Shown in pieces: positions 3,308 to 62,889 of a DNA stretch of 64,000 nt; within the stretch, counting starts at the first letter, position 1; each line of letters begins with the position of its first letter. The notes under the pieces are model-generated. The model was not told the origin of the DNA. It saw only the letters and a program-made list of their open reading frames with translations, and made no database searches. A program made the translations under genes and the position numbers. The DNA lies in IMG/VR virus record IMGVR_UViG_3300028592_000004, positions 165,211 to 229,210 of that record; one strand, 5' to 3'.

Positions 3308-6300
3308 TTACCGGGGATTGATAATCTCGACGTTGTCGTCCACGCCGATCTCGCCCCGGCGGTAGGCCTGTACTGCGTCTCTCACTGTAGCGAACGTCCT
3401 AGTCCGATTCGAGGTCGGCGAAGGCTTGGACGCCCGATAGAGGCCCCCAGCATACTCCTTCCCAGGCAGCTGGTGAGCGCGGAAGTTGGAGACCGCCAGC
3501 AAATTCCGGCTGGGCAGCATCTTCTCGTAGGCATCTGCGACAGCCTCGTCGCTCTGCGGAACATGGTACTGCATCGCGTCGCCGTCGAAGTCAGCGTTGA
3601 ATCCGGTGACGATCGTCGGCGAGATGTGGATCGTGTCGTCCTGGATCAGTTTCGGCCGGAACGCCATCAGGTTGTACCGGTGAAGCGTCGGTGCCCGGTT
3701 GAGCACGACCGGCCGATCTTCCATCGTCCGGAGCAGCATCGTGCGGGCGCGATCGGACCGCGACGTGACAGCTCGGGCCGCGTCCATCCGACTCATCCCG
3801 TTGCGAACCAGTCCGCGAACGATGTGCGGCTTGTAGACCTCCCACGCCTTATCTTCCGGGATCCCCACTTCGTCCATGTCGAGATCCGGGTCTGGAATGA
3901 TTGTGCCGCGACCGACCGTGTCGACCACCGAGCCGATCAGCTTCTGCTGGACGAAGCCATACTTCGGCGAACCACCGAAGATCGTCTTCAGCAGTCCCTT
4001 TACCTTGCGTTCCTGGTTCTTCGGCTGAGTCGGATCCGCCAGACCCGTGAGGGCCTTGAACGAGTTGTAGACGGCCAGGCGCTCATCACCCAGGTCGTCG
4101 AACTTGCCGGCCGCATCCTTCAGGATTCCGTTCGAATCCATGATCTCCTTGTAGAGCGCGTTGGCGTCGGCCACCATCGGTAGCTTGGAGCCCTGCATGA
4201 CAGACACCGGCCGGAACACCGGCGGAATGACCGGCACCTTCGTAAGCATCCAGTCCCGCGGGTGGATCCCGTGCTGCTCCGCGCTCTTGAGGTACTTCAG
4301 CTTCCGGATGGCCTCATCCCGCCGGGTCTTCTTGCCGGACGCGATATCCGCCCGAGCGTTCTCGATCATTCGCGGGAGGTTGATCGAGTCCAGGGCGTAC
4401 TTGATGGCGCTCGGCCCGGTGCGGTCGTTCAGCTTCTCGCGGCCGGCGAGGATGTCGAGGAACTTGTTCTCGGTCAGGCCGAGGACGCGACGGATCGGTT
4501 CCTCCATGACAGGCGACGGCATCGGCTCACTGAGCTTGATGAAGCTCCACCGGTTACCGCCGTGCCCGCCGGTCAACTCTGGATCGAACAGACCGCCCTT
4601 GACCGGGTTGAGCCCGCCCTTCCAGTCGACAGTGTCGGAATTGGTGATCTCGCGGTTGCCAGCGAACTCGTCGATGTCGGCGTCGCGGAGGGCCAGGGTG
4701 TTGAACCGTGTCCCGTTCCGCACCACGTTGATCCCGGAGCCGCGGAGCGTATCCACGAACTTCTTGTAGACCATCGGGACCTTCGGCATCGGCGGAGCGT
4801 GACCGCTCATGTACTGCGTCCAGTACTCCGGATGCTGCTGTCCGCGCACGACGGCAGCGTCACGCAGGAACTCCGTGGCTCCGTGGCTCAGGAGGGCGTT
4901 GGCATCCAGGAGACTCACCCGCTTGCTTCCGGTCTGACCACCCTTCGCCGGCAGCCCCTCGCTGGTGTAGCCGCCCATGCTCCGACCCTGGCCCTTCGAC
5001 TCGGCCGTGTGGTGGAGCTTCATGAAGTAGCGGTTGCCGGTGAAGATCCCCGGGATCTTCCGGTTGTTCGAACTCGGGTCGATCAGGTCTTCGGTGTCGG
5101 ACAGACCATTCTTCTGCAGCTCCTGCATAGCGTACTGCACAAGGTCCGGGATGTCCTTGAAGTCCTTGACGTTGTAGTGCTTGCCGGTCATCGCGGCGAT
5201 CTTGCCAAGCGTCGCCTCAACCACCTGGGCGGGGTTGGTGCGGGTGATGATCCCCAGCGGGTTGGCGAGCACTTCGTACGGCTTACCGTCTGCACCGACA
5301 GGCATCTGGCTGTCGGGGATGATCTTCGCGATGACGCCCTTGTCCCCGTAGCGGCCGGAGATCTTGTCGCCGGTCTGGGCCTGCATCACGCTCTTGACGG
5401 TGACCACGATCCCCTTGTCCGTCTTGGCGACGTCGACAACCTCTCCGGGAGAGTGGTGGTCCCAGGTCTCCGTCTGGTCAGAGAAGGACCGATCCCGGGC
5501 CTTGTGAAGTGAGTTCTTGGCCCGCTCCTTCTGCTTGGCGCCGAGGATGATCGGGTCATCCGGCTGCAGGATCGTTCCCGGCTTGACCACGCCATCGTCA
5601 TCGATCGAGTCCAGCACCTTCCGCGGGTACTTGCTCGGGAACATGCTGATGAAGTCCCGCTTCTTCGTCCGGATGTTGTCGTCCAGGTCCAGCCCGTGCT
5701 GGTACATGTGCTGACTGCTCAGCCGCTTGGCGAAGGACTCGCTGATGGCGAAGGCATCCTCAAAGTTGATCCCCTTCCAGGCGATGTAGGCCGTCCGGGC
5801 ATTCCGGCCGAGGGCCACGACTCCGTTCTTGTCGGTGTAGTTCGAGTGGGCGAGGAGCTGTCCCTGACCAACGCGATCCCCGGGCTTCACAACGGCGGTG
5901 TTGTGGAGGTAGGTCTTTCGGTTCGAGGGGTCGTGATTCCAGAGCTCGACGACTTCCTTCTTGCCGTCCGGCGTCTGAATCGTGATCTCGTCGTTGTCGA
6001 CGTGGGTGACCGTCCCGTCGACCTTGCTGCGGGATGCCCCGAACATCTCGCCGTACCGGTTCTCAAAGCTGTCGTCGACGTCCTCCGGCACGCCGGTGCG
6101 GACAAACGGAGCTTCCCCGTCGTCGAGCGAGAGGGCCTGCGTCAGCATTCGCTGGGCCATCGCCGCCCGCTGCCCCTTCATGGCCGACTTCATGGGGACC
6201 ATCGTCACCATCGGAGAGAGTGTGCTCTCCATGTTCGGCACTTCGAAGTCAACCTTGTCGCGCGGCACGAACTTCATCTTGCCGCCGACGAGCGCCGGGA

Positions 6301-7768
6301 CCTGGTCCTTGTAGGTCGCCATCGCGTTCGGGAAGGCGAGGACAGCCTTGGTGATCTCCTGCGGTGACTTGAAGACGGTCTGGCCGGTCCGCGCGTCCCG
6401 GAAGGGAGCGTACATACGGCCGTCCTTCCCCTTCTCCGCAGCGTAGGCGAAGCGGGAGTCGACACCGGCCTTGAGCGATTCAGGCGTGACCAGGCTGTCG
6501 ATGAAGCCGAACTGTCCAGGCTGGACGCTCCGCGCTTCGTCGGGCACCGAGTCGACGCTCGGGATCCCGCCCTCACCCAGCCGGCTGACGCGGTACATCT
6601 GCTCAATGAGCATCCCCGGGTTGATCTCTTCCCCGGGGTTCCCCAGACCGCTGTCGGTGATGGCGCTGAGCAGGCCGCTCGTCAGGATCCCGGACGGGAT
6701 ATGGTCCAGGTTCTTGCGGATGGTGCCCTTCCACAGCATCCGGCGGAGCATGTTCTTGTCTCGACCGAAACGCTCTGCGAGGAGATCTTCGGGGCCGAGG
6801 AGCGTCTGGAAGGCCGGGTTGTCGCGGTCGTCCGTCTCGTCTTCGCCCTTGTTGATCGCCAGCAGCTTGCGGGTGGCCGCGAGCCACGTCGGGGCGTCGA
6901 CCTTGTCGAATGCCTCGCGAAGGGTCTCCTTGTTGACCTCCGGATCGAGCTTCATCTTCCGGAAGGCTTCAGCAACGGCCTGCCCGCGCAGTCCCTCGTC
7001 CGGTTCGTTGCCGCGGACCAGCCGCCGGTAGAGCTTGTCGACCGCGCCGCGATCGTTCTTCGCCATGTTGGCGGCAGCCAGCTCGGGTCCCCACGCTTCG
7101 TTCAGCTGGGACGGCGTGACACCCATTGCCCGCAGGACCGGCCACATGGGGATCTCACCTTGGGCGATCTTGAGTTTGAAGATCCCGGACTCCGGATCCA
7201 TCATCACCCGATGCGCGAGCCCCTGGCCGGGGAGCACGTTGATGTGGGACTCCAGCTCGCCGCTCTCCTTCTGGCGGGAGAACGCTCCGGACATGAGGCG
7301 AAGCTGGTGGCCAAGCGAGTAGCGGTTCCCGCTGAGGATGAAGGCCCCGCGGTCCCCAAAGTAGGGGACGTTCGCGATTGTAGCCCGCCGTTCGGAGATC
7401 GGCTGCTGCGTGGCCAGGTCGACCAGGCGCCAGGTCCCTTTCAGCTTCCGGGACAGCGTCTTCCCGGTGAGGATGGCGTTCTTCTGGTCCTTCTTCGAGT
7501 ACCGTTCCGGCCCCTCGTACGCCGGGTCGACCAGCTCCAGCCGGTGCGTCTTGCTCTCGACCGGCTGGAACTTCATCGCGGAGTTCAGCACGTTGTCGAA
7601 GATCGACTGCCGGATGGCTGTGACGTCCCCGAAGCCTCGACGTCCGGTCGGCTGAGCGAGCGGCGGAGGAGACCAGGGAGCGGGCGCCGGAGGGGTGCCC
7701 ATTTGTGAATCCAGCCCCTGCAGCAGAGGCGAGGGGCTGGGGAGAAGGCCGTCCATGAAGTCAGGCAT
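3308..7768 (-). CDS. DNA-directed RNA polymerase: beta-like subunit fused to the N-terminal half of beta' (catalytic NADFDGD)
   Basis: beta motifs GAFILSG, TPES, NFEDA, GDKISGRYGDKGV, MKLHH, followed by beta' motifs PVIPPVFRP, NRAPTLHR, FNADFDGD. Confidence 0.95.
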   Translation of the reverse strand: MPDFMDGLLPSPSPLLQGLDSQMGTPPAPAPWSPPPLAQPTGRRGFGDVTAIRQSIFDNVLNSAMKFQPVESKTHRLELVDPAYEGPERYSKKDQKNAILTGKTLSRKLKGTWRLVDLATQQPISERRATIANVPYFGDRGAFILSGNRYSLGHQLRLMSGAFSRQKESGELESHINVLPGQGLAHRVMMDPESGIFKLKIAQGEIPMWPVLRAMGVTPSQLNEAWGPELAAANMAKNDRGAVDKLYRRLVRGNEPDEGLRGQAVAEAFRKMKLDPEVNKETLREAFDKVDAPTWLAATRKLLAINKGEDETDDRDNPAFQTLLGPEDLLAERFGRDKNMLRRMLWKGTIRKNLDHIPSGILTSGLLSAITDSGLGNPGEEINPGMLIEQMYRVSRLGEGGIPSVDSVPDEARSVQPGQFGFIDSLVTPESLKAGVDSRFAYAAEKGKDGRMYAPFRDARTGQTVFKSPQEITKAVLAFPNAMATYKDQVPALVGGKMKFVPRDKVDFEVPNMESTLSPMVTMVPMKSAMKGQRAAMAQRMLTQALSLDDGEAPFVRTGVPEDVDDSFENRYGEMFGASRSKVDGTVTHVDNDEITIQTPDGKKEVVELWNHDPSNRKTYLHNTAVVKPGDRVGQGQLLAHSNYTDKNGVVALGRNARTAYIAWKGINFEDAFAISESFAKRLSSQHMYQHGLDLDDNIRTKKRDFISMFPSKYPRKVLDSIDDDGVVKPGTILQPDDPIILGAKQKERAKNSLHKARDRSFSDQTETWDHHSPGEVVDVAKTDKGIVVTVKSVMQAQTGDKISGRYGDKGVIAKIIPDSQMPVGADGKPYEVLANPLGIITRTNPAQVVEATLGKIAAMTGKHYNVKDFKDIPDLVQYAMQELQKNGLSDTEDLIDPSSNNRKIPGIFTGNRYFMKLHHTAESKGQGRSMGGYTSEGLPAKGGQTGSKRVSLLDANALLSHGATEFLRDAAVVRGQQHPEYWTQYMSGHAPPMPKVPMVYKKFVDTLRGSGINVVRNGTRFNTLALRDADIDEFAGNREITNSDTVDWKGGLNPVKGGLFDPELTGGHGGNRWSFIKLSEPMPSPVMEEPIRRVLGLTENKFLDILAGREKLNDRTGPSAIKYALDSINLPRMIENARADIASGKKTRRDEAIRKLKYLKSAEQHGIHPRDWMLTKVPVIPPVFRPVSVMQGSKLPMVADANALYKEIMDSNGILKDAAGKFDDLGDERLAVYNSFKALTGLADPTQPKNQERKVKGLLKTIFGGSPKYGFVQQKLIGSVVDTVGRGTIIPDPDLDMDEVGIPEDKAWEVYKPHIVRGLVRNGMSRMDAARAVTSRSDRARTMLLRTMEDRPVVLNRAPTLHRYNLMAFRPKLIQDDTIHISPTIVTGFNADFDGDAMQYHVPQSDEAVADAYEKMLPSRNLLAVSNFRAHQLPGKEYAGGLYRASKPSPTSNRTRTFATVRDAVQAYRRGEIGVDDNVEIINPR

Positions 7769-30786: not shown

Positions 30787-30789
30787 CAG

Positions 30790-30860
30790 TTACCCCGCTG
30801 GGATTCGAACCCAGACTACCGGCACCAAAGACCGATGTGCTGCCGTTACACCACAGAGTA
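30790..30860 (-). tRNA. tRNA-Gln(TTG)
   Basis: Cloverleaf, loop CT-TTG-GT, T-loop GTTCGAATC. Confidence 0.88.
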
Positions 30861-31033
30861 AGCAAAAGACCCCGTCGCATGACAGGGTCTTTCGTGTCCC
30901 GGATCGCTATCGGAATGCCGAACGCACGCAACCAGATGGCCCTTTTGGGAACCACGAGCCGAAGCTCACAGAAGACTATTCGCTTTCCGGGCAATTCCAA
31001 CGGGATCCTAGCCGACAGTTGGGGGTTGAGCAA

Positions 31034-31104
31034 TACCGCGTATGGGATTCGAACCCACCTAAGCCGTTAGAAAGACGGCTGTCCTCCCCGAAGACGAACG
31101 CGGC
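31034..31104 (-). tRNA. tRNA-Glu(TTC)
   Basis: Stem GCCGT/ACGGC, loop CT-TTC-TA, T-loop GTTCGAATC. Confidence 0.8.
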
Positions 31105-31108
31105 ATAG

Positions 31109-31195
31109 CGGAAGTCGAGGGACTCGAACCCTCACACCCTTGCGGGCCGTCCAGGTAGCAACCGGCGCCGGCAAACCAGTGGCCGGATGACTTCC
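31109..31195 (-). tRNA. tRNA-Ser(GCT)
   Basis: Loop TT-GCT-AC, long variable arm, G73. Confidence 0.8.
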
Positions 31196-31198
31196 AAG

Positions 31199-31282
31199 CG
31201 GAAAGCCGAAGAATCGAACTCCACGCGTTTTACCGCGCCCCCGGTTTTCGAGACCAGTTTGCCTCCGTTGGCGGGACCTTCC
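31199..31282 (-). tRNA. tRNA-Ser(CGA)
   Basis: Loop CT-CGA-AA, long variable arm. Confidence 0.85.
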
Positions 31283-31287
31283 GTAAG

Positions 31288-31431
31288 TGACGATGCCAGG
31301 AATCGAACCTAGTGAGCAGGCCACATTGGCAGTACCTCCCGCCGCTCTGCATGCGAGCGGACAGTCCCTTCCACCGTTGGCTGATCTGCACTGGCCATAC
31401 ACCAGTCCCTCTGCCATTGAGGATCATCGTC
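31288..31431 (-). ncRNA. tRNA-like RNA (144 nt) with ~70-nt insertion in the variable region
   Basis: Acceptor GACGATG/CATCGTC, D arm CCTC/GAGG, stem ACTGG/CCAGT with loop TGTATGG, T arm CTAGG-TTCGATT-CCTGG. Confidence 0.65.
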
Positions 31432-31435
31432 AAAG

Positions 31436-31511
31436 TAGCAGCGACAGGGATCGAACCTGCATGCACACGGGTCTGAGCCGTGCCGCTCTGTCCAACATGG
31501 CGTACGCTGCC
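31436..31511 (-). tRNA. tRNA with CAG anticodon (Leu), short variable arm
   Basis: Stem CACGG/CCGTG, loop CT-CAG-AC, 5-nt variable loop. Confidence 0.78.
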
Positions 31512-31515
31512 GTCT

Positions 31516-31785
31516 TTATCGACTGGCATCACCAGTCGCTCGCCTGTGATTACGAATCTGCTGGTGCGGTGAGGACGGCTCAGGATAGGGAACACTCGCC
31601 GACCGCACCGTCCATCCCGCTTCCCAGTTGCCATCTTCGTCACGCAGGCGAATCATGCGGCCGACGATAGCGAACTTGGCGGGAATCCAACTCGTGGTTC
31701 GCTCTAATCCACGAGGGGTTAGTCGCTCCAGGAGGCATTGACAGTACAGGTCGCGAGAACGGGATGGAGTATGAGGTGCAAACAT
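31516..31785 (-). CDS. Hypothetical protein within the tRNA cluster
   Basis: 89-aa ORF with RBS AGGAG. Confidence 0.6.
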   Translation of the reverse strand: MFAPHTPSRSRDLYCQCLLERLTPRGLERTTSWIPAKFAIVGRMIRLRDEDGNWEAGWTVRSASVPYPEPSSPHQQIRNHRRATGDASR

Positions 31786-31798
31786 GATGGTCTCCTAG

Positions 31799-31881
31799 TA
31801 CCGAGAGCCGGAGTCGAACCGACAAGATCGCAATGATGGCGAGTCTACAGCTCGCGGGGCCTTCCAATGCCCAATCTCGGT
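31799..31881 (-). tRNA. tRNA-Tyr(GTA)
   Basis: Stem GCGAG/CTCGC, loop CT-GTA-GA, long variable arm. Confidence 0.85.
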
Positions 31882-31969
31882 GGGGCGGGCCACTTCACCT
31901 GATCCGAGTCCGGGAGTGGTGTCACAAGCACCTTCCCTTCTGTCAGGCCGTAGTACCCGTACGGACGTG

Positions 31970-32039
31970 AGACGCCGGTCAGTGTCGAGCTGACCTCACC
32001 ATCGTTTGCTGCGACGGGCCATCCCGGATGGACGGCGTC
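31970..32039 (-). tRNA. Degenerate tRNA-Cys(GCA)-like gene
   Basis: Acceptor GACGCCG/CGGCGTC+U73, loop CA-GCA-AA (A33), T-loop CTCGACA, tiny D loop. Confidence 0.55.
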
Positions 32040-32109
32040 TTGTGGCTGCGACGGGCGGTAAACCGCCACCGCGACGTCTACGCGGTGTCCAAACGTCGCA
32101 GCCTTTGAG

Positions 32110-32182
32110 CACAGCCCCAGGGAATCGAACCCTGCCAATCGAATTTGGAGTTCGACTCGCCAGCCTTGGATCATTGGGCCGT
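32110..32182 (-). tRNA. tRNA-Trp(CCA)
   Basis: Stem TCGAA/TTCGA, loop CT-CCA-AA; D arm weak. Confidence 0.75.
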
Positions 32183-32188
32183 GTGAGG

Positions 32189-32260
32189 CCGGAGCGACCG
32201 GAATCGAACCGGTGACCACCGGGTTTCAACCGATGACTCTACCAACTGAGTTACGCTCCG
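32189..32260 (-). tRNA. tRNA-Phe(GAA)
   Basis: Canonical D arm (CTCAGTTGGTAGAG), loop TT-GAA-AC. Confidence 0.9.
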
Positions 32261-36904: not shown

Positions 36905-38530
36905 CTACTTCACGAAGCTCGCCATCACGGCAGGAACGTCGGCCGACGCGCCGACGATGTCGAGCTGACCGGCATCCTTCGGGTCAGCGACCGAGAACCG
37001 CGTGGCCGTCAAAGCACACACGATGAGTTTGGCCGGACGGTTCATCTGCTCGCGGTACATCTGCAGGGCCTGGGAGGCGTGGATCTGCCCCGCCCAGCTC
37101 TCGTTGTCCGTGTAGATGACGAAGACGTCGACCTCGATCTTGTGGGCCAGAGCGTACAACATCGGCAGGGCGCAGTCGGTCCCACCGAAGTTGAGCTTCC
37201 GCATCTCAGCGATCGCTGTCGGAATCGTGTCCCGGACGCCAATCGCCAACGGCGTCACCGCCGCAGTGTCGTACCGGCCGTTACGACCCGCCGTGAAGGC
37301 AACGACATGCGTCTCCTCTTCCGTCCGGATCGGGATCAGAGCCAGAGCCGTCGCCGCCTCCGCCGCCGAGAGACCGGGCACGCTCGCGACGTGGCTACTG
37401 TGCATACTCCCGCTGACGTCGACGCCGAGCAGGTACTTCTTGTTCGTCGGCTCCAGGTACTGGAAGGCCTTGTAGAAGCCGTCGTCGAGGGCGGAGATGA
37501 TCCGTTGATCGACGTTCCAGGTCAGGGACCCCTTCACACCCTTACCGTTCGCGTAGACCTTCGAAGCGAGCAGAAGAGCGAACGGGTGGACCCGTTCCTT
37601 CTTCAGCCGATCCGGGTTGGTCAAGGCGTTCGTGACGAACCTGGTCGTGCTCGACAACGGCTTGATGAGGTCGATGGACGTCATCTTGCCGAGGTTTCGC
37701 ACCATCGCCGTCAGCCCCATGTGCGGCAGGAGGGCCTCCCACACCTTCGGCTCGTTGAGGTACTCGGTCGGGATCGCTTCCCGCGGCAGCTGGTACGTCT
37801 CGATCGCCTTGATGATCTCCTTGGCCGACGTCGCCGCCTTCGCAGCTTCGAAGCCCAGAATCGCGGGAGCCTCGCTGCCGGCACGGCCGTGGGCGATCCA
37901 GTCGAACACCTTGCCGTGCGGACTGTCGGAAGGCACCTTCGGCTTCGACAGCCGGAGGACGTCGCGATGGGACCACGCCTTGCCGCCTTCCGAGACGACT
38001 CGCGACTGATACTTGACGGCCTGATAGGCAGCCTGATCCGCCGGCCGGCTGAGATACCAATTCTGAATGGCACGCTTGAGGCCGCGACCCCAGCCCCGGA
38101 ACTGCTCGACGGCATCGACGAACTGGAACAGGTGATAGCCCGTCCGGCAGATGTCGTTCAACGCAGCGAGGGCCTGCTGACCGAGCTCTTCCTTCTGGCC
38201 GGCGAGGTACGCCAGGACGAAGACCGCCTGGTCGTTCTTCGGCGCCAGGGCTTCGAGGCTGATCCGGCGGGTCATTTCGAGGACACGCTTGGCGTCCTCC
38301 TGCACGCACTTGGCCAGGACGGCGATGCTGTCCTGCGTCATCTTCTGTTCGGTGACGTAGTACGATCCGCCCATCGTGCCGAGGATCAGGAAGCGTTCAA
38401 GCTGCTTCCAGTGATCAACGACGAACGAGAAGCCGCCAGCGTTGTTTTTCTCCATCGGCTTGCCGGGGATCGGCTGCGACTGCGGAGTCTGACGGGTGGA
38501 AGCCGAACGTGCGTAGCGTGACGCGTTCAT
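36905..38530 (-). CDS. rsr: Ro60-related TROVE + vWA domain RNA-binding protein
   Basis: NNAGG, RFLILG, GWGR, KYQSR, SHRDVLRL, DVSGSM (MIDAS), GGTDC, YTDNE. Confidence 0.95.
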   Translation of the reverse strand: MNASRYARSASTRQTPQSQPIPGKPMEKNNAGGFSFVVDHWKQLERFLILGTMGGSYYVTEQKMTQDSIAVLAKCVQEDAKRVLEMTRRISLEALAPKNDQAVFVLAYLAGQKEELGQQALAALNDICRTGYHLFQFVDAVEQFRGWGRGLKRAIQNWYLSRPADQAAYQAVKYQSRVVSEGGKAWSHRDVLRLSKPKVPSDSPHGKVFDWIAHGRAGSEAPAILGFEAAKAATSAKEIIKAIETYQLPREAIPTEYLNEPKVWEALLPHMGLTAMVRNLGKMTSIDLIKPLSSTTRFVTNALTNPDRLKKERVHPFALLLASKVYANGKGVKGSLTWNVDQRIISALDDGFYKAFQYLEPTNKKYLLGVDVSGSMHSSHVASVPGLSAAEAATALALIPIRTEEETHVVAFTAGRNGRYDTAAVTPLAIGVRDTIPTAIAEMRKLNFGGTDCALPMLYALAHKIEVDVFVIYTDNESWAGQIHASQALQMYREQMNRPAKLIVCALTATRFSVADPKDAGQLDIVGASADVPAVMASFVK

Positions 38531-38607: not shown

Positions 38608-38740
38608 CGTGAACATGGGGCTGATGTCCCTGTTTGACGTGTGCTATCTACTACACTACGGCCCCGTGAAAGAGGGGCCGCTGGGAGTTGCACCCAGGCT
38701 ACGCGATTGGAAATCGATAAGGAACGTCATTCGGCTCACG
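38608..38740 (-). ncRNA. Y RNA-like 1 (YrlA type, with permuted tRNA domain)
   Basis: Terminal helix CGTGAGCCGA/ATGTTCACG; internal T arm, loop-closed acceptor stem, D arm. Confidence 0.8.
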
Positions 38741-38748
38741 AATGCGAA

Positions 38749-38881
38749 ATCACGAACATGGAAGTTGGCATCCAGTCAATTCTTGTGCTCTACCGCTGAG
38801 CTACAGCGCCTTTCGACGCCGACTGGATTTGAACCAGTGACCCCAAGATCCGATGAGAACAGATACCGATCGGCTCGTGAT
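38749..38881 (-). ncRNA. Y RNA-like 2 (YrlA type)
   Basis: ATCACGAGCCGA/ATGTTCGTGAT helix; GGTTCAAATCC T arm, then TAGCTCAGCGGTAGAGC D arm. Confidence 0.82.
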
Positions 38882-39545: not shown

Positions 39546-39854
39546 TCAACGTGAGGCCGCGGAAACCGACGCAACGATCTCTTCGAACGTCGGGTAGTTT
39601 TTGATTGGCGTGTCTGCTCCGATGAGGCCAGCATCGAGCAGAGCTTGCTTTCGCACTTCAGATAGCGCGGCTTCCTTCGGGATGGTCCCGAAGTCTCCGT
39701 CACCTCGTAGCGCCCACGTCGGCCGCTGGCCGGCCGGCATGTCTTGACAGCGTGCCGGATCAGCTGGGCCAAACCAGATCCGAGCGTTTTCGAACCGATG
39801 TCCGTTCACATAGACGCGGACATGGTCCCCCTTTCGCCAGAGGGTCAGTTTCAT
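39546..39854 (-). CDS. Hypothetical protein
   Basis: TGATG coupling. Confidence 0.6.
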   Translation of the reverse strand: MKLTLWRKGDHVRVYVNGHRFENARIWFGPADPARCQDMPAGQRPTWALRGDGDFGTIPKEAALSEVRKQALLDAGLIGADTPIKNYPTFEEIVASVSAASR

Positions 39855-61484: not shown

Positions 61485-61518
61485 AAAAGAAAAGAGACGG
61501 CAGGAAAGTCCTGCCGTC
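61485..61518 (-). terminator. Intrinsic terminator
   Basis: GACGGCAGGA/TCCTGCCGTC stem plus TCTTTTCTTTT on the minus strand. Confidence 0.75.
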
Positions 61519-61527
61519 CCGGGATAG

Positions 61528-61956
61528 CTACTCTCCGTCAGCCAGCTTGCGGTACGCCTCGATCTGAGCGAGCTCGGCTGCGGTGAACAGCTCGGGCTGC
61601 GTCGGCTGAGGCATCCGGGCTCGCTTGTAAAGGCGAGCCAGCCAGAAGTGATCGATGTGGTAGCCGCTACGGTACGCTTCCATCGTCACCAGCTTTCCGG
61701 CTTCACGCGTGGCCGGCCAATCCGGGACCGGAACGTATTCCGAAGTCTCGGGACAGGCCAGCTTGAAGTTCGGTTGCGGTCGATTCAGTGGCCGGTTCTG
61801 AGGTTGCTTTCCCTCTTGCCGATACCACGTCGCCGCCAGAGAGGTGTGCTTCCTCATCACCAGACAAAGGCGCTTGAGGAGGGCACAGGTTTCGTAGTTA
61901 CAGGGGTGGAATCCGTACCTGGATTCCGTCTCTTTGCGTTCGGTGACCTGAGTCAT
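61528..61956 (-). CDS. Hypothetical protein
   Basis: Start moved to MTQVT (RBS GGAG). Confidence 0.65.
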   Translation of the reverse strand: MTQVTERKETESRYGFHPCNYETCALLKRLCLVMRKHTSLAATWYRQEGKQPQNRPLNRPQPNFKLACPETSEYVPVPDWPATREAGKLVTMEAYRSGYHIDHFWLARLYKRARMPQPTQPELFTAAELAQIEAYRKLADGE

Positions 61957-62305
61957 CGTTGGGTTCTCCCAATTTGAGCAGTTGATATCTCTTGAGGAGA
62001 CGCCGTGTCTCCCCACTGACAAGACCTGTGGCAATCGCTGTCGCCTCGTTATTCCGTGCCGGCTCATGGAAGAGCACGAACGGAATGTGACAGTGCTGGA
62101 GGTGGGCAGCGCAAGCATTGAGCTGCCGAAGATCCTTGACCCCACACAAAGCAAGATGGGGATGTTCTTCCCACGTCAGATTCAAGAGGTGTTTAGCCTC
62201 CAGAGCTGCGTGGACCGCCTGCACGGCCCGTTGGGGCGGCGGTAGATCTTGTCGGACGAAGATGTAGAGATACTGCGTCACTGGGAGGTGCGGTCAATGT
62301 TCCAT
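61898..62305 (-). CDS. Peptidyl-tRNA hydrolase 2 (Pth2)-like protein with in-frame UGA at codon 4
   Basis: YIFVRQDL..QRAVQAVHAA, FHEP...TAIAT; AAGGAGG 8 nt before ATG GAA CAT TGA CCG CAC CTC CCA GTG ACG, in frame; ends in TAA. Confidence 0.75.
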
Positions 62306-62335
62306 TGTGAGGTCCTCCTTCTGAAATGAACCCTG

Positions 62336-62409
62336 TGTCGGGGGCGGGATTCGAACCCGCAACCAACGGATTTGAAGTCCGGTGCTCTAACCATTTGAGC
62401 CACCCCGAC
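62336..62409 (-). tRNA. tRNA with UCA anticodon (opal suppressor; not tRNA-Sec)
   Basis: Acceptor GTCGGGG/CCCCGAC+A73, D arm GCTC/GAGC, loop CT-TCA-AA, short variable loop, T arm GCGGG-TTCGAAT-CCCGC. Confidence 0.9.
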
Positions 62410-62442
62410 AACAGGGGACTCTACGAGACTGACGACCGGCCG

Positions 62443-62889
62443 TCAATCTTCCTTGGCCGTCTGCAGCCACTCGCCGAGAGCGAGGGCCGACTCGTACGAG
62501 ACATACAGCCGCACATCCTCGCAGACGGCCAGACGGCCATCCGGGGTGCAGACGGAGACCGCAATGTTCGTGAGCTGGCAGTCGACAAGAACGACGCCAC
62601 CAAGAAGCAACTTCCTACCATCAGCACCTGTGATATCGGCGTACTGGCGGTAGAACTGCTCAAGTAAGGCCCGCGGACCGAGGACCCGCGACAAATGCAC
62701 GGCGCCATACTTCGGCGACTTCCCGGGCGAGGACAGCTGCACGGAGCCGATCCGCCGTAGCTGAACCAGCAAACCCACTCCATCCATCCACTCGGGAATG
62801 AGCATCTTCGCGTGGAAGATGTTCGGATCGGGCGGTATCGCCTTGGGACGAAAGAACGCTGCGATCCAACCAAACACACGTCGAAGCAT
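62443..62889 (-). CDS. Hypothetical protein
   Basis: RBS AGGAG. Confidence 0.6.
   Translation of the reverse strand: MLRRVFGWIAAFFRPKAIPPDPNIFHAKMLIPEWMDGVGLLVQLRRIGSVQLSSPGKSPKYGAVHLSRVLGPRALLEQFYRQYADITGADGRKLLLGGVVLVDCQLTNIAVSVCTPDGRLAVCEDVRLYVSYESALALGEWLQTAKED

Follow-up and report, generated by a model that had tools for sequence, protein, structure and literature searches.

Why would a large phage that uses TGA as its main ordinary stop codon encode a tRNA with an anticodon matching TGA, directly upstream of a small gene that itself begins with an in-frame TGA? We addressed this question for a 64,000-nucleotide stretch (the window) at the end of the 229-kb IMG/VR contig IMGVR_UViG_3300028592_000004. 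An earlier note on this sequence had pointed to an opal-suppressor tRNA, a perfect Shine-Dalgarno sequence and an early UGA in frame with a Pth2-like ORF, and had proposed a readthrough switch. All of these elements were confirmed, and the following features could be identified, all on the minus strand.

62418..62446 (-): promoter-like site (TTGACG, 17 nt, TAGAGT) just upstream of the tRNA; a pattern match only, with 0.5 expected by chance in the region
62336..62409 (-): opal-suppressor-type tRNA, anticodon UCA, short variable arm, no encoded CCA
62314..62320 (-): Shine-Dalgarno sequence AAGGAGG, 15 nt after the tRNA and 8 nt before the leader ATG
62297..62305 (-): three-codon leader ATG GAA CAT (Met-Glu-His)
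62294..62296 (-): in-frame TGA followed by C (UGA-C), cognate to the adjacent tRNA(UCA)
62282..62293 (-): four sense codons (CCG CAC CTC CCA) between the stop and the GTG, translated only if the TGA is read through
61898..62281 (-): ORF with predicted Pth2 fold, 127 codons from GTG (62281-62279), ending in TAA; the GTG is a possible alternative start or reinitiation codon
61528..61956 (-): conserved downstream ORF of 142 aa, of unknown function, overlapping the end of the Pth2-like gene
61494..61520 (-): intrinsic-terminator-like hairpin (12 pairs plus T-run) closing the putative tRNA/Pth2-like/ORF142 unit

The tRNA and the stop-led Pth2-like gene

The tRNA is canonical, with an Rfam score of 73.9 bits (E 1e-15) over the full model, the best of any tRNA in the window. 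ARAGORN places it at 62335-62409 with anticodon tca, and the anticodon loop reads CU-UCA-AA. With 74 nt, a 7-bp acceptor stem and a 5-nt variable region it is not a selenocysteine tRNA, and the 'SeC' label given by ARAGORN only reflects the anticodon. Its amino-acid identity could not be resolved from the best E. coli matches; the nearest E. coli tRNA is tRNA-Trp with a weak 75–77% identity; the same comparison gave a plasmid tRNA-Arg for the tRNA of homologous locus L128 (L numbers denote loci of the homologous gene family), and nothing for that of phage CBB. No terminator-like site lies on this strand between the tRNA and the Pth2-like gene, and no purine-rich site precedes the GTG. The Shine-Dalgarno sequence can pair with CCUCC after the stop, but this fold is no better than that of shuffled sequences (z = +1.3). 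The downstream ORF shows 33% identity (E 2e-16) to the gene in the same position in L002, but has no Pfam or PHROG hit.

As the earlier note had stated, the genome is not globally recoded, at least within the 64 kb of the 229-kb contig that was examined. Of 64 confident minus-strand genes in the window, 42 end in TGA, and 22 of those overlap a start codon. No other real gene in the window has a comparable arrangement of Shine-Dalgarno sequence, ATG, short leader and TGA; the candidates at 39808 and 21662 lie out of frame inside real genes.

The Pth2-like assignment is confirmed at fold level. The ORF product was modelled with AF2 with good confidence (pLDDT 87.5, pTM 0.76), and its 12 best PDB fold matches are all Pth2 structures (E 6e-6 to 4e-4; TM 0.61–0.75 to 2zv3, 3erj, 1wn2, 1xty and 1q7s). 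The window protein scores 19.3 bits (E 1.3e-3) against the Pfam PTH2 model (PF01981), below the cut-off of 23, whereas 21 of 31 family members match at E<=0.01, and the XacN1 and Xoo-sp13 forms pass the cut-off at 25.3 and 29.5 bits. The family profile hits PDB 24bt_A (deposited as a peptidyl-tRNA hydrolase) at E 3.8e-5 and the Pth2 structure 2zv3 at E 0.023. In these alignments the putative catalytic Lys of the 'GK' motif aligns with a conserved Gln (Q17) and the Asp of 'DAG' with a near-invariant Glu (E73), while the Thr (T81) is kept. The protein therefore belongs to a divergent subfamily, and hydrolase activity is not assured.

Conservation of the early stop and the neighbouring anticodon

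The early in-frame stop is a trait of the family rather than of this locus alone. In about 37 of 50 distinct homologous phage loci, a Shine-Dalgarno site is followed by an ATG, 1–12 codons and an in-frame stop, and then by 2–10 codons before the conserved first strand, in most cases with no ATG, GTG or TTG in between. In comparison, only 61 of 452 control ORFs (13%) have any in-frame ATG leader (Fisher 5e-19), although the statistics treat related loci as independent. The stop is TAG in 36 of 37, against a background of 21%, and the next base is a purine in 31 of 32. Residues between the stop and strand 1 are conserved (x-x-Pro, Glu-His-Ala, Thr-Gln-Tyr), and changes are synonymous in the Thr and Tyr codons that lie upstream of the annotated ATG of L002 and in the leader Thr codon of L048/L051. 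The codon aligned with the GTG of the window is Thr or Cys in the nearest relatives.

Wherever a suppressor tRNA was found beside such a gene or in the same genome, its anticodon matched the stop. TAG goes with tRNA(CUA) in at least 14 cases, i.e. L002/3/26, L037, L039/40, L042, L045, L062, L063, L065, L066, L127, ME3, CBB, XacN1 and RsoM2USA. Only two loci have a TGA leader with a tRNA identified nearby, namely the window and L128/L129, and both carry tRNA(UCA). The closest relative (65% identity) has TAG plus an adjacent tRNA(CUA). In the tree, in which the early stop is spread over both main clades, the window (TGA) pairs with L002 (TAG) inside a clade with L128 (TGA) and L127 (TAG), suggesting at least one and probably two coordinated switches of codon and anticodon, albeit with supports of 88, which are not decisive. 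Some family members next to a tRNA(CUA) have ordinary starts (L004, L014). L027 remains ambiguous, as it has a TGA before the gene, but the upstream frame is long and open, Rfam finds no tRNA there, and an internal ATG exists.

The second TGA/UCA locus was found by the representative-protein search. A search with the 15-mer anticodon arm found 59 viral loci, seven of them with tRNA(tca), but only the contig of the window itself has a Pth2-like gene. A scan of bacterial genomes yielded only two Planctomycetota MAG contigs, both with a TAG leader and tRNA(CUA). The arrangement is also present in the cultured jumbo phages CBB, GAP32, BF, ME3, XacN1 and RsoM2USA. The canonical PTH2 paralog of CBB, in contrast, is ungated and has a plain start, while the HD-like partner gene also carries in-frame TAGs in RsoM2USA, BF, GAP32 and CBB.

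Readthrough and alternative explanations

These data support the readthrough interpretation of the earlier note, and we propose, with reasonable confidence, that the tRNA(UCA) and the Pth2-like gene form a matched two-part cassette, probably transcribed together. Ribosomes would load at the strong AAGGAGG, start at the ATG at 62305 and meet UGA at codon 4, where RF2 may terminate and release a tripeptide. Alternatively, the phage's own suppressor tRNA decodes the UGA and the ribosome continues into the Pth2-like protein, which gains an eight-residue N-terminal extension, so that its production is tied to how well the tRNA competes with the release factor. That readthrough actually occurs is inferred from sequence, without expression, charging or proteomic data. 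The further suggestions of the note, a sensor of termination or tRNA status and a link to bar-type minigene drop-off, likewise remain inference. As to function, our preferred reading is that this specialised Pth2 paralog handles tRNA-ester products linked to suppression, either as feed-forward clean-up of peptidyl-tRNA or stalled ribosomes caused by readthrough of normal stops, or as negative feedback on the charged suppressor tRNA, which would matter here because two thirds of the phage's genes end in TGA.

The strongest alternative, which we consider unlikely but cannot exclude in this window, is that the leader only delivers ribosomes, which terminate at the TGA and restart at the GTG 12 nt downstream, the tRNA being merely a neighbour. 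A GTG lies four codons after the TGA in the window, and in L128 an ATG follows directly (TGAATG), so that reinitiation could yield protein without suppression in exactly the two TGA cases; 'Y-M-Y' members also have an internal ATG that gene callers use. However, most members have no canonical start between the stop and the conserved strand, the residues there are conserved, and the GTG is not conserved in relatives. Nor does coupling explain why the stop is TAG in 36 of 37, never TAA, or why it tracks the neighbouring anticodon.

Less likely still is a release-factor sensor that needs no phage tRNA, in which the early UGA or UAG reports low RF2 or RF1 activity through near-cognate host readthrough. 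The very short leaders and the exclusive use of the single-RF stops TAG and TGA would fit, and UGA-C may be an intrinsically leaky context in E. coli, so that host tRNA-Trp might suffice. Against this, suppressor tRNAs with the matching anticodon are strongly co-located or co-occur, and background readthrough of UAG by host tRNAs is normally very low.

Similarly improbable is a wider reassignment in which TGA is read as sense in a set of (late) genes. Some relatives (L031, L020, L062) have further internal TAGs, and the database proteins P0023 and P0073 were called with TAG=Q, although the Q at the stop position in such proteins reflects the alternative code used and is no evidence for the inserted residue. 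No other in-frame TGA was found in the window, although this covers only 28% of the genome and limited recoding of late genes elsewhere is not excluded. XacN1 and similar phages are annotated compactly with the standard code, read-through of their 18 amber-terminated genes gave nothing, and the position of the stop at codons 2–13 is conserved. An assembly error or decaying pseudogene is very improbable: although there is no independent assembly of this particular TGA and the GC3 of the gene is 0.59 against about 0.77 for the genome, the same architecture appears in dozens of independent assemblies and in cultured phage genomes, and the ORF is intact, models confidently and keeps all family-invariant residues.

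Related systems and orphan suppressor tRNAs

In stop-codon-recoded phages (Lak megaphages, crAss-like phages and jumbo phages; PMC6784885, PMC10607447, PMC13037316), phage-encoded suppressor tRNAs decode in-frame TAG or TGA in late genes, and expression of those genes is proposed to depend on the tRNA. Here, TGA is the main stop, and the visible target is one specific small gene, plus an HD-like partner in relatives, with the stop at a conserved position right after a strong Shine-Dalgarno sequence, often beside the tRNA itself, and switching together with the anticodon. In prfB, an early in-frame UGA likewise makes output depend on competition at a single-RF stop, but escape is by +1 frameshifting and the product is the factor being sensed. 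Canonical PTH2 of archaea, eukaryotes and jumbo phages (PMC7824862; e.g. CBB_392) shares the fold and the VR-DL...Q..HA and T-A motifs, but the present protein is a separate paralog, fused or adjacent to an HD-like domain. Lambda bar minigenes resemble the leader in being 2–4-codon ORFs behind a strong Shine-Dalgarno sequence, of the kind that generates short peptidyl-tRNAs, but they are stand-alone, not in frame with a hydrolase gene, and involve no stop-anticodon matching; the link is only a resemblance. Programmed readthrough in Qbeta A1 and retroviral gag-pol also decodes a leaky stop at low frequency, but extends a functional upstream protein with host tRNAs, whereas here the upstream product is a peptide of 1–12 residues and a dedicated phage tRNA is supplied. 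No description of a stop-gated Pth2 gene was found in the literature searched.

A more speculative possibility is that the suppressor tRNA, the stop-gated Pth2-like protein and, in relatives, the HD-like partner form a self-regulating module, in which the hydrolase acts on the aminoacyl- or peptidyl-tRNA(Sup) esters of the suppressor itself, so that suppression induces its own brake. Such a homeostat, the inverse of RF2 autoregulation, would let a phage run a nonsense suppressor at a set level without wrecking termination of its own genes. This remains tentative, but it would explain orphan suppressor tRNAs in non-recoded jumbo phages.

Many jumbo phages that use the standard code carry suppressor tRNAs with no known purpose; for XacN1 no target genes could be identified (PMC5852040), and for RsoM2USA the targets could only be guessed at (PMC8504454). 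The present finding supplies a first likely target that is specific, conserved and co-varies with the tRNA anticodon, namely a specialised Pth2-type protein and, in several phages, also its HD-like partner. It explains why that gene is truncated or missing in the annotations of GAP32, CBB, BF and RsoM2USA, and apparently of the Yersinia and Erwinia relatives, where the tblastn match has no annotated feature. It also offers a natural orthogonal tRNA/leader switch, and a possible intermediate stage on the road to full stop-codon recoding.

Anatomy and genomic context of the tRNA and the Pth2-like gene

The earlier note described a tRNA with a UCA anticodon followed by a Pth2-like ORF with an in-frame TGA at codon 4, and this description was found to be accurate. 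All features are on the minus strand, and those from the ATG to the end of the ORF are in one frame:

62336-62409 (-), full-length tRNA with anticodon tca
62320-62314 (-), AAGGAGG, fifteen bases after the tRNA
62305-62303 (-), ATG, 8 nt after AAGGAGG, followed by GAA and CAT
62296-62294 (-), TGA, followed by CCG CAC CTC CCA
62281-62279 (-), GTG, the first codon of the listed ORF
61898-62281 (-), Pth2-like ORF of 127 codons, ending in TAA at 61898
61528-61956 (-), next ORF, conserved in the same position in the nearest relative

The tRNA was identified with Rfam (73.9 bits, E 1e-15) and is the best-scoring tRNA in the whole window. The anticodon was read by ARAGORN; since the tRNA is 74 nt long, with a 7-bp acceptor stem and a 5-nt variable region, the ARAGORN label 'SeC' only reflects the anticodon. 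No CCA is encoded. There is no purine-rich site before the GTG. A promoter-like site is located just upstream of the tRNA, no terminator-like site separates the tRNA from the Pth2-like ORF, and a strong terminator-like hairpin follows the next ORF. The GC3 of the Pth2-like gene is 0.59, compared to about 0.75-0.85 for neighbouring genes, suggesting that the tRNA/Pth2-like cassette was acquired horizontally.

The window is 100% identical to one end of a 229-kb IMG/VR contig, has a G+C content of 61.6%, and is almost entirely coded on the minus strand. It looks like a jumbo phage, since it encodes RNA-polymerase beta-like proteins, a helicase and a Ro60-like RNA-binding protein. In particular, two large ORFs (357-2273 and 3308-7768, both on the minus strand) match phage multisubunit RNA-polymerase beta-type families, which marks the contig as a jumbo phage with its own RNAP. 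The Ro60/TROVE-like protein (36905-38530, minus strand; phrog_850, E 6e-65) lies next to a 138-nt tRNA-like element (38673-38810, minus strand; Rfam tRNA 31.9 bits), which may be a Y-RNA-type partner. In addition, ARAGORN finds a cluster of seven tRNAs (Gln, Glu, Ser, Leu, Tyr, Trp, Phe) at 30789-32260 (minus strand), of which only three reach the Rfam tRNA gathering score, so that the others are atypical. TGA is the main stop codon: 42 of 64 confident genes end in TGA, and 22 of those overlap the next start codon. Within the window, no other in-frame TGA flanked by coding signal was found, nor any other real gene with an SD-ATG-short-leader-TGA arrangement. Hence, this part of the genome is not recoded.

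A divergent subfamily with a predicted Pth2 fold

The protein encoded in the window matches Pfam PTH2 only weakly (E 1.3e-3, 19.3 bits, cut-off 23), but 21 of 31 relatives match PTH2. The family profile finds PDB chains deposited as peptidyl-tRNA hydrolase, i.e. 24bt_A at E 3.8e-5 and the Pth2 structure 2zv3 at E 0.023. An AlphaFold model built on 25 relatives is confident (pLDDT 87.5, pTM 0.76), and its 12 best PDB matches are all Pth2 structures (2zv3, 3erj, 1wn2, 1rlk, 1xty, 1q7s; TM 0.61-0.75). The subfamily is divergent, as the Lys of the Pth2 'GK' motif aligns with a conserved Gln, and the 'DAG' Asp aligns with a near-invariant Glu. The family is large, with 1775 clusters at E<=1e-10. 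In a genome collection of 185,579 species, scanned only for the conserved N-terminal peptide pattern of the family, just two contigs encode a relative. Both are Planctomycetota MAG contigs (1.68 and 0.50 Mb; loci L065 and L066), with a TAG leader and a tRNA(CUA) about 600 nt downstream, and their Pth2-like ORFs also end in TAG. These loci lie inside large bacterial contigs; this may be a prophage and a hint at the host range of this phage group. Jumbo phages also carry a canonical PTH2 (PMC7824862); in phage CBB this copy (CBB_392) keeps the GK Lys and has an ordinary start.

Conservation of the early stop and its match to the suppressor anticodon

About 50 distinct homologous loci (designated here by L-numbers) were collected from viral, metagenome, genome and GenBank phage collections. 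In about 37 of them, the conserved N-terminal strand (Y-x-Y-x-F-V-R-x-D) is preceded in frame, 2-10 codons upstream, by a stop codon; in the three forms with a fused N-terminal domain, the stop instead lies just before that domain. The stop is itself preceded by ATG plus 1-12 codons, usually with an SD, and the leader is very often Met-Thr-stop. In most of these loci no ATG, GTG or TTG lies between the stop and the strand. The intervening residues are conserved (x-x-Pro, Glu-His-Ala, Thr-Gln-Tyr), and close pairs differ by synonymous changes both there and in the leader. In contrast, among 452 other ORFs of at least 100 codons in the same DNA, 61 have any in-frame ATG leader and 8 have ATG+SD+TAG (Fisher test, 5e-19). 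The stop is TAG in 36 of 37, against a background of 21%, and never TAA, and the following base is a purine in 31 of 32; these p-values ignore shared descent. Family tree analysis places the TAG-leader state in both main clades, with ordinary starts arising several times. One possible decoupled or remnant leader is found at L004 (3539-3600), where a tRNA(CUA) is directly followed by AAGGA and then ATG AAA TTA GAT TTT TTG TAG; readthrough would add only six codons before a TGA, and the Pth2-like gene lies 460 nt further on with an ordinary ATG.

[quoted passage not shown] The nearest relative (65% identity; L002, L003 and L026, the last from the same metagenome as the window) has a tRNA(CUA) in the same position, followed by GGAG, ATG CCC TTC CCG TAG and five codons leading into the conserved strand. 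A second TGA case is L128/L129 (53% identity), with tRNA(UCA), AAAGGAG and ATG TCC ACG CTC ATG TGA directly before the gene, while L127, in the same subclade, has tRNA(CUA) and a TAG leader. The tree groups (L127 TAG, L128 TGA, (window TGA, L002 TAG)) with SH-aLRT 88, which implies two codon switches on this tree, although one is not excluded, and each is mirrored by the neighbouring anticodon. Elsewhere, TAG leaders are located within a few kb of tRNA(CUA) in L037, L039/40, L042, L045, L062, L063, L065, L066 and phage ME3; in CBB the tRNA(CUA) is 4 kb away, and XacN1 and RsoM2USA have them according to their papers (PMC5852040; PMC8504454). No mismatched pair was seen.

The gated gene is present in Serratia phage BF, Cronobacter GAP32, Pectobacterium CBB, Acinetobacter ME3, Xanthomonas XacN1 and Xoo-sp13, Stenotrophomonas RAS14 and Ralstonia RsoM2USA; Yersinia and Erwinia relatives were also matched, on the basis of tblastn only. 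In annotation, the gene is either started at an internal ATG that removes strand 1 (GAP32_397, CBB_406) or missed entirely (BF, RsoM2USA), and the Yersinia and Erwinia matches also have no annotated feature. Two CUA suppressor tRNAs have been reported in XacN1, but reading through the 18 annotated amber stops revealed nothing, so that no targets could be identified (PMC5852040), and the RsoM2USA paper likewise has no target (PMC8504454). Full-text literature searches found no paper linking a Pth2 gene to an in-frame stop or a suppressor tRNA.

An HD-like protein (weak Pfam HD match) occurs in three arrangements: fused N-terminally to the Pth2-like domain in XacN1, Xoo-sp13 and RAS14, with the TAG leader in front of the fusion; immediately downstream in L029, L034, L036, L038, ME3, BF, GAP32 and CBB; and as a separate nearby gene in RsoM2USA. 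No HD-like homolog was found in the window. The RsoM2USA copy (RsoM2USA_91; L060:3406) has its own ATG AAA TCG TAG leader, and the BF, GAP32 and CBB copies (L053/L057/L058:2950) share a conserved internal in-frame TAG that splits their annotation into two small CDS, suggesting a small amber-gated gene set. A second partner domain of unknown function is adjacent upstream of the Pth2-like gene in L004 (by eye only), L005/L006 (L006:3606-3983) and L008, looks by eye to be fused N-terminally in L014 and L016 (N-terminal regions), and is a separate gene in CBB (CBB_461; L064:38385-38711). The CBB copy has an ATG CTA TAG 26 codons before its annotated start, which may be chance. In L009 (position 2125), L012, L013 and L032, the gene just upstream of the Pth2-like gene also has a GAAAGGAA, ATG AAA ATG AAA TAG leader in frame with a 120-codon ORF of unknown function. 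Neighbouring genes are often translation-related, including tRNA arrays, peptide deformylase, a CCA-adding enzyme, and genes annotated as valyl-tRNA synthetase and glutamyl-tRNA amidotransferase. Phage-encoded tmRNA genes, one of them permuted, lie within about 1.5 kb of the Pth2-like gene in three unrelated loci (L015:774-1167, L016:3369-3690, L041:3087-3473).

Proposed mechanism and alternatives

From these comparisons we infer that ribosomes start at the SD-led ATG, that the phage tRNA(UCA) competes with RF2 at codon 4, and that only readthrough yields the Pth2-like protein. The conserved context (a Thr codon before the stop and a purine after TAG; UGA-C here) fits selection on decoding efficiency, given the context effects that probably operate in E. 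coli. The purpose is less certain. A specialised, tRNA-linked paralog that is made only when suppression works suggests one of two roles: it may clean up the by-products of readthrough (peptidyl-tRNA, ribosomes run to mRNA ends), or it may act back on the suppressor tRNA to hold suppression at a tolerable level. The second role would matter in a phage whose own genes mostly end in TGA.

Termination followed by reinitiation is possible at the GTG in this window, and at the ATG in L128, but it cannot explain the lack of start codons in most of the family, the exclusive use of TAG or TGA, or the anticodon match. A pure release-factor sensor that uses host near-cognate tRNAs ignores the co-located suppressors. 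Genome-wide recoding is contradicted within the window, and assembly error is contradicted by the comparative data, although this one TGA has no second assembly.

The interpretation put forward in the earlier note, namely that the hydrolase is made only when the suppressor tRNA outcompetes RF2, is supported as far as sequence comparison can take it. What emerges is broader than the original finding: a conserved cassette of suppressor tRNA plus stop-gated Pth2-like gene in jumbo phages, which appears to be undescribed.
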